Positions 7,900 to 57,426 of a DNA stretch of 64,000 nucleotides are shown in pieces. Both the position numbers and the translations under genes were made by a program. Positions within the stretch are counted from its first letter, which is position 1; every line of letters starts with the position of its first letter. This stretch comes from Octopus bimaculoides (Eukaryota). Under the pieces are notes generated by a model, which was not told the DNA's origin, ran no database searches, and was given only the letters and a program-made list of their open reading frames with translations. Location of the stretch: NCBI RefSeq assembly GCF_001194135.2, contig NC_068998.1, forward strand, positions 55,209,331 through 55,273,330, in the 5' to 3' direction.

Positions 7900-8346
7900 C
7901 TGATCGAAGGGAACTCCTTTATTTCTTCTTGTCCCACTTTTTCACTCTCTGTCGTCCATGTCTCCTATCGTCACTTCTCTCCGTTGACAACCACTGCTTG
8001 ATACAAACCTTAAACTCCTTTCACATCTTCTCTCCTGCTTTATCCGTCCTCACATCGCAAACGGTGGAGATTTATTCGATATGACGTAATGCAGTCGTTA
8101 TTATGTTGATGAAGAAGAATCTCTACGACAGTTATTAGTTGTAGAACACTGTTGCTTCTCTTGCCGCTGCTCACCTCTCGCGGAGCTTTCTTCACCACAA
8201 AGCCATATAAGGCAAAAAACATTACAACTCCATTTCCACAGTTTCTTTGTATGATCTCCATCTCCCACCAGGCACCACGTTTCGCCTTCTCACCAATAAT
8301 ACACCAAATATTAATGGCCAGATTACTTTAACCTCGAAACGTGCAG
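7900..8346 (+). promoter_or_regulatory. CpG-retaining regulatory island with perfect CArG box and CRE-like site; possible non-coding first exon
   Basis: CCATATAAGG at 8203-8212; TGACGTAA at 8082-8089; possible donor CAG|GTATTG at 8347 (weak). Confidence 0.35.
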
Positions 8347-11300
8347 GTATTGTAGAACAATAATTTTTCTACGGAAATCGACACGTCCACCCACTTACGC
8401 ACATGCACACACACACTCACTCGAATTCCTAATGATTTAATACTCATCTTTATAGACATTATCTTAAATAGAAACCTTGTGTGTGTATGTGTGCGTGCGT
8501 GTGTGTGTATGTAAATAAGTGCACGGCATATTAATGGCGTGTCGTAAGAGTGGAGTTGGTTTCGCTTTGATGCTGCGATAACCACGTGTTGGATGTCACT
8601 TAAGGAGCAATCATTTAGCCGTATTATAGATACACATTAAAATTCTAGATACGCATACAGAAATAGAGAAGGAGAGAGGGAGGGAGACAATCTATATAAC
8701 AGAATATACGCGAAGGAATGAATTAACGAACGAGTAAAAGAATGCGTTTATGGCAGAGGTAAACATTAGAGAAGATATTTAATGTTTGCCATAGAAACGG
8801 TGAGATGTGGATGTCGGCGACTCTAAGAAAAAGTTGACAGAAAGAGTTCTCAATAAGTTTGGTGTTATGGGAAAGAGAGAGGGGGGAGACAACGACGGAG
8901 AGAGAGAGAGGAAGGGAGAAGAGCATTAATTTGAATTTGAACGGGTTTTGTAAAAGAATTGATCAAGCAAAAGCTTCGATATTTGAAACGTCTCTTAAAG
9001 GGCAGACAGCCTACCATAATTATTGGATGCTGAGAGAACTCCTGAAAAGATAAAGGCCAAGATGATTAGAGAGAGGGAGAAAGAGAGAGAGAGAGAGAGA
9101 CAAAGATGCAACAATTAAAACAGCAGAAAATAAAGACCAATGGCAAAGAATTGTTGGCTGAGGCACTGAAAGAGTTGGTGATTTCAGACGATGAGGATAA
9201 CGGTTTTACTTAAAAGACAGCTGAACAGTGTTCAATAGTTACTAAAGCAATTACTTTCATAACTGCTTGAAGAGGATTTCTATCTCAGATCTAACGATCC
9301 TCTTAAAACACAAGGGTACTGAGTTTGTTTGTTTTTTTTTAGTGCCCAGCAGGTAGTTATAGGTTCCACTTTGACTCTCGACCAGGCCTCAGACCAGGCC
9401 AACTGCTGGACCTTCCCTCCTCTCTCTCTCTCTCTCTCTCTCCCTTTTCCATTCGTGCAATGGGTCAGATGGAATATGTTGGGGTAGAATTCCTTTTTAT
9501 GGCTAGATGCCCTGCCTGTTCCCAACCCTCAAGTAAATAAACATTTCCCCTGTCAAGATAACGACATACATACATACATATATACTATGGTCTCCTTTTA
9601 GTTTCCACCTACCAAATCCACTCACAGGGTTTTGGTTGGCCTGGGGGTTATAGAAGACATTTGTCCAAGGCGCCATGCAATGGGACTGAACCTAAAACCA
9701 TGTGATCAGGAAGCAAACTCTTTAACCATTCAGTCATCCCAATGCCTGGCCTAATCAGTTGGCTGCTAATTTTGTTTTTCCCTTTGCTAATCTCATGCTC
9801 TGTGGTTTTCTAAGATTCTTTCTGTATCATCTGAGCCTATTGAGTCAAGTTGACCTGGTTTAATAAACTGTTTCAATCTGGTAAAATCATTGCAGACAAA
9901 TCTCAAACAGTTCTGAGATCTAAAGGCAAACAGAGTGAGATTATGTAAGATGTTTAGCCATAAAACATAATGAGTTCTTTTGATCTTCCTCCAACTGAAA
10001 TAAATAGAACTTGTCTGTCAGTAAACCAATCAAACAGTTTGAGGTATGATCTACTGACATGAAATTCCCCAGAATATACACAGAAAAATTCTGTTCTTTA
10101 TCAATCAATATTATTTTCTCACATTCTGCCCACTGCTAACAAAGTTACATACGAAATTTGTATGTGTGAAAATTGATTAAAAATCAATATTGATTTTTCT
10201 TTTTTTATGCAGTCTTGATAATAATGATTATGATTGTGGTGGTGATACCAATGAAAATATTACAGTGTGCAGCTACTACTGCTACTACTACTTCAATTTA
10301 AGGGTGATGTTTATTGCTGATATAGCTAAGTTGTGCAAGGTAAAAAAACAAAACAAAAAACCAAAACACTTAACTGAGCAATTCCTGCAAAACAGGAATT
10401 GGCCATTTAACATCTCAGCAACGTAATTCTCAGAATTGATTTTCCCCCTGAACCTGAGAAGTGAGGAAATTGTATTTCTGCATTGGTCGTCATCAAATAA
10501 AATTTATATATTTTTTCAGAATGAATCTGTGGCTTTATAGCAAATTCTTCAAGCAAATCTTTGAGACAAAAGTTCTATTTTCAGGGGTGTCTCTTGGTTT
10601 GTTGACTAATCTTTAATTGTATTCCATTATTGTGAAACAATTGAAAAAGCAAACACTCTCAATTGCAGAACCTCAAAAGAAACATCTAATTTGGCAGACT
10701 TCCGTTACCATTTAAATTCATGTCTTTTAGCTTCATAGATTTCTATATTTCATTTTAGAACCTCGTTACCAAACATAAGAATCTTCGATATTTTAATTTG
10801 TGGGTGGATAAAGGCTTGCAGCCAGATTATAATTGCCAAAATTTCCTTATTATTTCAAATTATTTCAACTACTTAGGTGAGATTAAGCTACTTGTGACTC
10901 TAACAGTCAATTCCTATGAAGTGATCTCAGCTCTTAAACTATTTATGAGGTCAAAGATGGCATTGGATGTCACCCAGAACAGAAGAAGAAAGCTTTGAAC
11001 GATGAGAACTGGGCTGGAGTAAAGCCATCAGAAGGAAGGCCCCAAAATGTTTTGCATTCTCTCCCGATGATCCGTCAAACCTGCTGGCATCCAGTCTGTG
11101 AGGCTTTCAATTGACGGCCTTTGCACAAGCAGGCTCTCTCTCTCCTCCCCCTCCTCTCCACACACACATAAAATTGGGCTTTCAGTTTCCATCTTCCAAA
11201 TCCACTCACAAATCTTTGGTCAGCCTGGGACTATAATAGAAGATATTTGCCCAAAGTGTCACGCAGTGGGACTGAACCTGAGACCATATAATCATTCCTG

Positions 11301-12461
11301 CACCTATGAAATAAGAGAATCTCCTTAAAGGCAGTACTCTAGCATGGGCTGCACGTCCAATGACTGAAACCAGTAAAAGAGTAAAAGAACAATTTGTTTT
11401 GCACCAAAATGTGCAAACATATTGATTGATCATTGAGGCATTATGGGGTTAAAGAGATCAATAAATGTCTGTTGATTTTTTTTCAGTGCCAAATATTGGT
11501 GTTTGTCTGAATAGATCTTAATATTCTTCCCTTTAATTCACAGAAAATATGTTGGAGCCAGATATAATGTTGTGAGAAACCAATAGCAGCAATTATAACT
11601 CCGTTTCAATTCTTGGTGGTGGTGGTCGTGGTGGGCAAATTCAATTTATTTTAGATCTCAACGTTGTTGTTGTTGTTGTTTAATTGTAGATCAGTTCTGA
11701 TCAAGCAGAACTATGGTGAAAAATATTCTCCTTTTTATTTTTTTAAAGACAAAATATTCAGAACCATATAATGTGTTCTTCCTTTTATTGAAGTGGAAGA
11801 GTGTAACTAAAAGGAATTTTTGTTGCTATTTCTAGCAGGCCACTCCAAGCCATAAATGGTGTTTCGTTAGTTAAATGTGTTGATGTCTTTAGGAAAGGTA
11901 ACAATGTTCCAGTTTCCCACCACTCTTTGCTAAAAATATTTGTGCTGAGCCTAAAGAAATGAATTGTTTTTCAACTCAAATCAATGATTAATTCCAGATA
12001 TTTCTTCTTAGCTGAAGCCAGGACTAACGAAAGAAGAAAAAAATATTGATTTCCAATATTAGTAAAAAAAAACAAAAGATCAAATTTATTGATAAGGAAC
12101 ATAATTAATTAAGAAAGAGTAGAGTTAGTCTCACCATATTACTAATACTTATTTTACTGACGCCTGAGAGATAAAAGTCAAGTCGATTGCTATGAGGTTT
12201 GAACCCAGATGCAAAACAATGCAATTAGATATGGCAAGGAATTTTATCTGGTGCTCAACCAATAGTGATCTCTTTTATCTTCCATTAGAGGAAAAAATAT
12301 GATTACAGGTTTCTAAGACCCATTTCTTTTAGTTCTGGATGAGAGATATTTACTCCTGTGAGAATGGGCTGTTGTTTATTGCTGGTGACTTTCACACATC
12401 TGATATCTATTTGCAACAACTTGTGGGATCGATTAATGCAAATTCAAATTCAAAACACATT

Positions 12462-55879: not shown

Positions 55880-56066
55880 CTTGACAGAGGGTGACAGGTT
55901 CTAAAGATCTTGACAGAGGGTGACATGTTCTAAAGATCTTGACAGAGGGTGACATGTTCTAAAGATCTTGACAGAGGGTGACATGTTCTAAAGATCTTGA
56001 CAGAGGGTGACAGGTTCTAAAGATCTTGACAGAGGGTGACTTGTTTTAAAGATCTTGACAAAGGGT
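55880..56066. repeat. Minisatellite, 29-bp unit CTTGACAGAGGGTGACA(T/G)GTTCTAAAGAT, about 6.4 copies
   Basis: Counted directly. Confidence 0.95.
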
Positions 56067-57231
56067 ACTAGACCAGGAAGTTCATCTGAACAAGGGCCAT
56101 GAAAATGTTTATAGAAAAGGCACACAACAAAGATTCCAATCTCGTAGAAAGAAGAGAAATCACCATGTTAACAACTAAATTTTGAATTGGATCAAGCAAT
56201 TTAAGAGACTCGAAGGAGGCATCAGCCCAAAGATAACAGCAATACTCAGTGCCAAGTGAAATTGTAGCCATATGAAGATACAGGACACTTCCAGCTGTAA
56301 GAACTTTGCATGCACAGGAGATTTAACCTTAATGGTGGCTGGCATGGCAATGGATTAAACATATTATTATGTTGTATTTAGTTTTTCTGAAAACATTAAA
56401 GAATACTGGAGTTAGCAAGTATCCTTGTTTAATACCTACTTTGGTTTTAAACATTCACCAATAGACTTACACTGCTACCAATAAATTCTGTTGACCAATT
56501 CAATTCCAATAAATTCTGTTGGCCATTTCCTATGTTCTCGTAATCCATTGTATTTTTTAGCCAATGAAACACCTTTTTTAATCTTTATAAAATGTCACAT
56601 GACACATTTCTAACAACTATAGTGTATATCTTTTATGAAATGACTAAGAAAATTCACTTTTTCTCAACTCATTTATTCTTCAGTATTCATTCATAGAAGA
56701 TGGATATTTAGTTTTTTTTAAAATTAGGGTTTGATGTTTAAAGGGACATTTTTTCAGAAAGGAATTTTTGAATGATTGGGTCCATTGAATGAATAATTTA
56801 CGTCGTAAGAAAGATCAATTTCCAAGCTTTATAAGTATGATCGTTATTTATCGATGAAAAGGAAACTTATGTCGGAATTTTGGTTCAATGATTCAATAAA
56901 ATATTACCAAAATTTATTGAGCAAAGGATGTAAAAGTAAGCTCCATCAATTGTCATTTGTGAAGATAAAAGTGTAACTTTGAGTGGTAATTTTATTCTGG
57001 GCAATAAAAAAGCATCTTAACATCTTTTATATCATAAAAGTAAAAAAGTGTGTGGAGAAGACAAAAGTAAAAAAAAAACCCCCAATTTTTTGAAGAGAAG
57101 GAACAGACTTCTTTGATCCTTCCAATTTCAATGTTTTCTGTTGTTTAGTTATTGTCTGTTTTGTGAAAATATACCAGAATTCGCATCTTCAAATGAAATA
57201 ATTTAATTACATTTCTTAATTTCCATTGCAG

Positions 57232-57426
57232 ATGGCATTTCGAGTGCGGAGCTCTAAGTACCGCCATATTTTTGGCAGTCCGTATAGAAAAGAGCTTTGC
57301 TATGAAAATGTTCATATTACAAGAAATGCCCATGACAGTAATTTCTGTGCTGTAAATCCCAAATTTCTGGCAGTTGTGATTGAAGCATCAGGGGGAGGAG
57401 CATTTTTAGTACTGCCATTGGAAAAG
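57232..57426 (+). CDS. CORO2B: Coronin common coding exon 1 (65 codons, MAFRVR...LPLEK)
   Basis: Acceptor ttccattgcag ends at 57231, immediately followed by ATG; donor AAG|GTAAGT at 57427; phase 0. Confidence 0.95.

Follow-up and report, generated by a model that had tools for sequence, protein, structure and literature searches.

Coronins are regulators of actin turnover and signalling. The 64,000 nucleotides (nt) of Octopus bimaculoides DNA considered here (contig NC_068998.1, positions 55,209,331 to 55,273,330 of the forward strand; termed the window below) carry the 5' half of a gene for a short coronin that probably belongs to class 2 (type II). Six leader exons, designated A to F, lie upstream of the first common coding exon (exon 2), and RNA data connect them, directly or through one another, to a single 3' splice site next to the start codon of that exon. 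With good confidence, we read the locus as a system in which at least five transcription start regions and six leaders converge on one phase-0 acceptor and give rise to four N-termini, the choice of promoter setting the N-terminal tail of the protein. Swapping of N-termini had been proposed in a first-pass annotation made from the sequence alone; convergence on one phase-0 acceptor is upheld by spliced contigs, raw reads and conservation, whereas two of the four connections proposed there are not.

The coronin gene and its common acceptor

The 3' splice site and the start codon read cattgcag^ATGGCATTTCGAGTGCGG (57224-57249; the caret marks an exon boundary throughout), and the acceptor AG is flush against the ATG at 57232, exactly as the first-pass annotation had it. 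The junction from 57426 to 57612 at the end of exon 2 is present in all RNA runs mapped to this exon. A GT-AG model comprising eight exons beyond exon 2 (to 61975) encodes 391 amino acids (aa) without a stop codon, and O. vulgaris proteins match the exons of the window with 96-100% identity (tblastn). The model matches coronin-1C, -6, -1B and -1A end to end in a phmmer search of the PDB, with E-values from 2e-139 (coronin-1C) to 3e-132, and the Pfam domains PF08953, PF00400 and PF16300 are present in its homologues. Its parts are those of a short coronin: a basic N-terminal motif, DUF1899, a WD40 propeller of seven blades and a C-terminal extension that is conserved. Sequence beyond the end of the window encodes the unique region and the coiled coil of the C-terminus; for an O. 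vulgaris protein of 99% identity a long C-terminal helix is predicted at residues 561-606. Short database fragments matched by a query of 104 aa read ..FQ^MAFRVR, that is, through into the acceptor-ATG boundary. A search of the introns for transposons or other genes found no open reading frame of at least 130 aa outside N runs and microsatellites.

Percent identity was discarded as a means of distinguishing type I from type II, as the model is 51% identical to CORO2A and 52% identical to CORO1C and CORO6, a tie. Judged from sequence characters, the octopus protein is likely, not proven, to belong to class 2 (type II; Eckert et al. 2011, PMC3203266), because class-2 diagnostic motifs are present, a deletion of type I proteins is absent and an intron position is shared. 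Two 11-residue stretches are common to the octopus protein and CORO2A; all four type I structures contain GKGDSSIRYFE, and GKGDSS occurs also in a Toxoplasma outgroup. The four type I proteins all share a 2-aa deletion (HERK--CEP) that the octopus protein lacks, and the intron position with the acceptor against the ATG is common to the octopus gene and vertebrate CORO2A. NCBI names the orthologue coronin-2B, the O. vulgaris proteins of 99% identity being listed as 'coronin-2B isoform X11/X15', whereas coronin-1A-like and coronin-6-like are the names given to other relatives among the molluscs. The type II assignment of the first-pass annotation is thus favoured by motifs, deletion and intron position and left undecided by the identity values. 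One protein in the comparison (P0177, the 635-aa entry 'Coronin-2A [Pteropus alecto]') has some 130 residues duplicated internally, a prediction artefact which accounts for its score of 585 bits.

Leader exons and their transcripts

The RNA evidence derives from public runs (coded X plus a number), four of which were mapped to 57100-57720. Joins spanning tens of kb were read as loose ends on short repeat-free stretches, which were then matched to the window, and raw junction reads were counted on the donor side of D, E and F. The loose ends ahead of 57232 match 32760-32791, 38274-38303, 45218-45247 and 50840-50870, and all junctions are GT-AG. Exons D, E and F and the A/B-C leader are all joined to 57232 and have their 5' ends in separate places, which is the pattern of alternative first exons. 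The transcripts encode four N-termini: an untagged one (E), MGSASVE- (A/B-C), MSPTEQKADG- (D) and MEGPAPASPSKRMKSTGWGLVT- (F). The tag-bearing leaders C, D and F are open in frame to exon 2 and carry a purine at position -3 of their start codons.

Exons D, E and F are spliced directly to the common acceptor. The reading frame of exon D (38274-38303) adds the ten residues MSPTEQKADG, with A at -3 and no upstream ATG (uATG). Its donor at 38303 is joined to ATGGCATTTCGAG (57232 onward) in 13 raw junction reads of X27, in three of X28 and in contigs of X15 and X9. In the X15 contig (depth 1054), Illumina adapter sequence immediately precedes 38220, for which reason cDNA 5' ends are taken to pile up here; the contig of X9 begins at 38198. 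Exon D is the dominant leader in X15, X27 and X9. Exon E, which has no uATG either, leads to the untagged MAFRVR protein; the main X13 contig has a depth of 144, begins at 45167 and passes from 45247 into ATGGCATTTCGAG, and X27 provides seven raw junction reads. The 5' ends of exon F lie at 50407 or further upstream, at 50516 and at about 50712 (X27 reads), and its reading frame (50805-50870) adds the 22 residues MEGPAPASPSKRMKSTGWGLVT, with G at -3 and, depending on the start site, zero to four uATGs. Up to 50870, one contig each of X15 (depth 241) and X34 (27.5) runs colinearly with the window and then goes on with ATGGCATTTCGAG, X27 covers this leader at a depth of 1-3, and the O. vulgaris protein P0123 starts with the F peptide.

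Two observations concern sequences around exon F. Contigs of X15 and X34 that match from 50785 onward are preceded by TTGAAAAGAAACCAACAAACAAAATTAAAT, which is found nowhere in the window, and there is no AG before 50785; an allelic or paralogous sequence, or an exon lying within an assembly gap, could account for it. In the introns just past exons B and F (14331-14365 and 51016-51050), hundreds of 31-mers of very high depth occur in every RNA run and probably represent fragments of a repeated or strongly expressed element rather than of the coronin transcript.

Exons A and B reach the acceptor through exon C. A single X15 contig of 927 nt consists of 7887-8346 followed by ATGTAAAAAATAAAATTG... 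(window 13917 onward) and represents the complete chain A-B-C-exon 2 (7887-8346, 13917-14259, 32697-32791, 57232 onward), the lengths fitting exactly (343 + 93 = 436 nt). The loose end past 14259 reads CTTCTGAGTTCTTAACTTG.. in X15, X34 and X45 and corresponds to the junction from 14259 to 32697, and AACCATCAAACATGGGATCGGCAAGTGTTG(AG), found ahead of 57232 in X1, X15 and X34, corresponds to exon C, whose tag matches O. vulgaris proteins starting with MGSASVEMAFRVR. The route via C adds a tag of 7 aa with A at -3 and carries 6-14 uATGs; the ATG at 14257, at the end of exon B, opens only a five-codon upstream open reading frame (uORF; MLLSS, then stop). Coverage of exon B extends over 13912-14259 in X15. 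Since contigs of X34, X40 and X45 begin inside island B, at 14051, 14028 and 14078, respectively, the island probably has a start site of its own, and exon B, which is internal in transcripts coming from A, probably serves as a first exon too, with starts near 14028-14078.

In the RNA runs searched at both donors, a junction from 8346 or 14259 to 57232 appears in no read and in no contig. All four GT donors named in the first-pass annotation are used, of which only 38303 and 50870, with the predicted products +MSPTEQKADG and +MEGPAPASPSKRMKSTGWGLVT, are joined directly to 57232; the unextended product expected from 8346 and the +M product expected from 14259 have to be given up, these donors joining 13917 and 32697 instead, and exons C (+MGSASVE) and E (untagged) had been overlooked. 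One X25 contig runs unspliced past the donor at 8346, and X27 contains no raw reads for exon A.

Leader usage differs among runs. In X13 only E was found; X1 has C, X9 has D, and X34 has F together with C; in X15 the order is D, far ahead of F, followed by C, and in X27 it is D (13 reads), E (7 reads) and F, without A. Exons A, B and E are each present in different sets of runs. These differences fit sample-dependent promoter use.

Two further points relate to exon C. Roughly the initial 26 nt of the following intron (32792-32817; L004 7201-7226; GTATCGTATCTTTGTCTCTGTGCATG) are near-identical in Argonauta, exceeding the conservation of the coding part of the exon, which suggests a splicing regulatory element. 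The MGS start of the tag was compared with that of N-myristoylated proteins, for which PROSITE pattern PS00008 gives G-{EDRKHPFYW}-x(2)-[STAGCN]-{P} directly after Met1. The fifth position is Val in GSASVE and Asp in GSPRDL of Argonauta; myristoylation was rejected as unlikely, as this consensus is not matched and the decapod homologue lacks the MG start.

Features of the window (all exons, splice sites and the TATAAAG motif on the + strand)
Feature	Position	Strand	Remarks
Leader exon A	7887-8346	+	non-coding; CpG island 7401-9200, observed/expected ratio 0.97; donor 8346 to 13917
Leader exon B	13917-14259	+	CpG island 13651-16350; donor 14259 to 32697
Leader exon C	32697-32791	+	internal; ATG 32771-32773 adds MGSASVE in frame; donor to 57232
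First exon D	38198-38303	+	5' ends about 38198-38220; CpG island 37851-39300; ATG 38274
TATAAAG	45125-45131	+	36-42 nt upstream of exon E 5' end; CpG observed/expected ratio 0.22, outside islands
First exon E	45167-45247	+	non-coding; in-frame TAA, no ATG; donor to 57232
First exon F	50407-50870	+	CpG island 50501-52350; ATG 50805; donor to 57232
Common 3' splice site AG	57230-57231	+	every spliced leader joins here
First common coding exon (exon 2)	57232-57426	+	...PLEK, 65 codons, phase 0
Further coronin exons	57612-57728, 58455-58601, 58745-58909, 59349-59468	+	GT-AG model
Further coronin exons, continued	59942-60046, 60309-60405, 60517-60629, 61862-61975	+	GT-AG model
CpG islands	7401-9200, 13651-16350, 37851-39300, 50501-52350		observed/expected ratio 0.75-1.3
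Assembly gaps	12824-13413, 22579-22603, 28768-28966, 30249-30591, 39375-39384, 46762-47413		

The six assembly gaps are all intronic and lie at least 500 nt from RNA-supported exons, and no reading frame crosses any of them. Spliced contigs span gaps colinearly on the + strand (A-B, B-C, D-exon 2 and E-exon 2), and the gap-free locus of Argonauta hians has the same order C-D-F-exon 2. Further leader exons could be hidden in the gaps.

Start regions and conservation of the tags

The window has a G+C content of 34.6% and an overall CpG observed/expected ratio (o/e) of 0.36, the median over 500-bp windows being 0.28. The four CpG-retaining islands noticed in the first-pass annotation are real, enrichment being present at each of them when o/e is computed (0.75-1.3). 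Smaller rises not noticed there are located at 28951-29550, 40451-41400, 56751-57300 and 62151-62650. The stretches 28951-29550, 40451-41400, 15301-16350 and 62151-62650 retain CpG (o/e 0.75-0.84) without an RNA-supported exon assigned to them; they may be extra start sites or unrelated unmethylated regions. Instead of the four start islands proposed originally, there are at least five transcription start regions in the RNA data: A at about 7.9 kb, B at 14.0 kb, D at 38.2 kb, E at 45.2 kb and F at 50.4-50.7 kb. Four of the five lie in CpG islands and the remaining one (E) is of the TATA type; by their position, they would be promoters. The TATAAAG motif is a putative TATA-box promoter of exon E, and the 20-nt segment that holds it is missing from Argonauta. 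Inr-like motifs (TCAGT/TTAGT), which the first-pass annotation had noted at three islands, were discarded as promoter evidence, as the + strand has one T[CT]AGT per 342 nt and its presence at the islands does not exceed chance; the copy at 50708 is the only one located where reads begin.

Two candidate elements accompany the start regions. Within exon B (14150-14215; L001 255-320), two E-box/M-box-like copies of TCACATGAC/G flank a GC-rich box, and the 5' untranslated region (5'UTR) of a decapod coronin transcript is arranged likewise (CCCAGCCTGTCACATGACC...CCCGCCCC...GTCACATGAC), so that a conserved element of the promoter or the 5'UTR may be present. The block AGAGTT(A/G)CCTCCCTTACTGCGG(C/T)GCGC (38095-38121; L004 9852-9878), some 100-125 nt upstream of the 5' ends found for exon D, is conserved between Octopus and Argonauta and is a candidate promoter element.

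An alignment with the Argonauta locus, as suggested in the first-pass annotation, recovers exons C, D and F and an acceptor likewise flush with the ATG (TTTCCAG^ATGGC). The D peptide is identical in Octopus and Argonauta, with four synonymous and no non-synonymous codon changes (exon 2: 23 synonymous, 4 non-synonymous), and the best-conserved stretch within exon D is its coding part. The F peptide of Argonauta is MDRQPPGSPSTRMKSTGWGLVT, in which SPSxRMKSTGWGLVT is kept, and WGLVT recurs in Sepia esculenta and in a second decapod, where third positions have changed synonymously. This pattern argues that the D peptide and F's C-terminal half are under purifying selection, and less strongly that C is. 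Among database N-termini, O. vulgaris has MGSASVE- and MEGPAPASPSKRMKSTGWGLVT- and Argonauta hians has MSPTEQKADG-; transcripts of more distant cephalopods, one of the runs being from Sepia esculenta, have MEGLPATTTTKNRWGLVT-, MMEGKPTTAPKNRWGLVT-, MTCSKHVGSSTVET- or plain MAFRVR. Models named 'coronin-2B isoform X..' by NCBI in Octopus vulgaris and Argonauta hians already carry these N-termini.

Interpretation, alternatives and known systems

By promoter choice, a short flexible tail would be placed ahead of the conserved basic motif RVRSSKYRH. Such a tail would alter how the free N-terminus is processed as well as its chemistry (Met-Ala as opposed to Met-Gly, Met-Ser or Met-Glu), that of F would add the candidate phosphosites SP and RMKS, and a tail might sterically hinder or create contacts at the N-terminal face. 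Localisation or phosphoregulation by tissue, as proposed in the first-pass annotation, may be a consequence. In an AlphaFold model of the F isoform (75-sequence alignment), the pLDDT (predicted local distance difference test) score is below 50 for residues 1-3 and 7-29, which comprise the tag and MAFRVRS, and above 90 over residues 40-370 of the confidently predicted propeller; by this model the tags would be disordered, flexible tails before the basic motif. The predicted N-terminal peptides are (Ac-)SPTEQKADGMAFR, (Ac-)MEGPAPASPSK and GSASVEMAFR for the tagged forms and (Ac-)AFR for the untagged one.

Several points weigh against this interpretation. Two low-depth X15 contigs that end at 57232 match none of the exons A to F, and at least one or two further leaders must exist beside these six. 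Exon A may itself be an internal exon, its contig beginning at 7887 and a candidate acceptor (ttttcag) being present at 7871-7877, and the exact positions of the transcription start sites are approximate. The expression evidence consists mostly of assembler contigs, whose depth is not quantitative, and the differences in leader usage are differences between tissue-coded runs, not named tissues. Use of the tag ATGs is predicted, with indirect support from the apparent purifying selection on D and F, and the A/B-C leader with its 6-14 uATGs may be poorly translated. Finally, the first half of F differs between species, leader C is weakly conserved (MGSASVE, MGSPRDLE and ..VGSSTVET) and exon E is not recognisable in Argonauta. 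As to further leaders, a candidate non-coding one (56906-56941) ends at 56935 (..GGATGTAAAA^GTAAGC), with the common acceptor some 300 nt downstream; by a mixed loose-end consensus, an exon ending at 56935 is the best candidate within the window for the two X15 contigs.

The most serious alternative is that the promoters regulate only the timing, place and amount of the mRNA and its translation, the tags being tolerated by-products without function. It would agree with the predicted disorder of the tails, with the fast divergence of leader C and the first half of F, with the untagged, lineage-specific exon E, with the many heterogeneous and probably spurious extensions in vertebrate CORO2A predictions, and with a uORF load that differs strongly among leaders, as translational control would have it. 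We nevertheless consider it rather unlikely in view of the D peptide, with its four synonymous and zero non-synonymous changes in the most conserved part of its exon, and of the WGLVT sequence, which is invariant from octopus to cuttlefish in spite of synonymous changes. A further argument against it is that N-terminal knock-in of an 8-aa FLAG tag into mouse coronin 1 led to more co-localisation with F-actin and phenocopied the knockout (PMC13485075, 2026), the short tag thus abolishing the function of the protein.

Two other explanations carry far less weight. In its literal form, the model of the first-pass annotation has four islands, each with a first exon spliced directly to 57232 and giving no extension, +M, +MSPTEQKADG or +MEGPAP..LVT. 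Its islands and donors are genuine and two of the donors, 38303 and 50870, behave as it says, yet the junctions from 8346 to 13917 and, in three runs, from 14259 to 32697, the failure of either donor to join 57232 in any contig or read, and the omission of exons C and E make it very improbable as a whole. That the isoforms are artefacts of chimeric contigs, contaminating genomic DNA or mis-joins at assembly gaps could be suspected from the reliance on de Bruijn contigs, the gaps in the window and the X25 contig that is unspliced through the donor at 8346. Raw paired reads span the D and E junctions, however, the same junctions recur in independent studies and under two species labels, the same peptides occur in independent NCBI models and in Argonauta and Sepia transcriptomes, and every junction is GT-AG; we regard an artefact as scarcely credible. 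Convergence of promoter-specific leaders on one phase-0 acceptor is therefore preferred.

Related arrangements are known from other coronins. Human coronin-1C (CRN2) is elongated N-terminally by alternative splicing, with three variants reported (PMC3203266; Xavier et al. 2009 via PMC3268813), in line with what had been stated in the first-pass annotation. Alternative 5' exons of CORO1C are reported to lengthen the N-terminus and to leave the beta-propeller untouched, as in the octopus gene, and isoform 3 is restricted to skeletal muscle; unlike the octopus gene, CORO1C is a vertebrate type I coronin with three variants, compared with at least four N-termini and at least five start regions, and its extensions are unrelated. 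Vertebrate CORO2A resembles the octopus gene in having a tiny in-frame phase-0 leader, MT[IV][TA]K, ahead of MSW.PQYRSSKFRH, and its acceptor is likewise placed flush with the ATG, as shown by bird predictions that read ..FLPLQ^MSWHPQ. The mini-leader MTVTK, which had been attributed to human CORO2B, was found in vertebrate CORO2A proteins (MTITK, MVITK, MTVTK) by a search that returned CORO2A only. CORO2A has one conserved leader of 5 aa, compared with three conserved cephalopod leaders of 7-22 aa, and the sequences are dissimilar. Arthropod coronin-2B-like proteins (P0161-P0237, P0001-P0004) begin in one of two conserved ways, MTN[ST]Q[LV]- or ..M[VIL]D[VT]R.C.KP..-, the second reading MLDTSECQKP in crustacean-like fragments. 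As in the octopus gene, these N-termini are mutually exclusive leaders just before the basic motif ([WS]FRGVRSSKFRH) and are conserved across orders; unlike there, the junction lies a few residues further in, the sequences are unrelated and the leaders are known from protein predictions. A literature search found no paper devoted to alternative first exons of coronins, and none for CRN2i3.

Because CORO1C, CORO2A and arthropod coronins have N-terminal leaders too, the design of acceptor and alternative leaders appears, as far as sequences indicate, to be old and widespread. The architecture is thus common, and the isoforms are already contained in automated annotation; what sets the octopus gene apart is how many leaders it has and that three tags specific to cephalopods (MGS..E, MSPTEQKADG and ..WGLVT) are conserved. 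More tentatively, and at somewhat less than an even chance, the acceptor flush with the ATG may have been a 'docking site' since early in the history of class-2 coronin genes of bilaterians, to which mini-exons differing from lineage to lineage would be attached and yield tails of distinct function. The three coleoid tails, each with its own promoter, would then have persisted over hundreds of millions of years and would tune activity or localisation by cell type.

The corrected 5' gene model comprises six leaders, four N-termini and both TATA-type and CpG-island promoters, and the isoforms matter for N-terminal tagging of this coronin and for the design of antibodies against it. The conservation of D and F across cephalopods makes the function of the tags directly testable. 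Because eight added N-terminal residues abolish the function of mouse coronin 1 in vivo (PMC13485075), natural promoter-switched tags of 7-22 residues are plausible regulators rather than noise.

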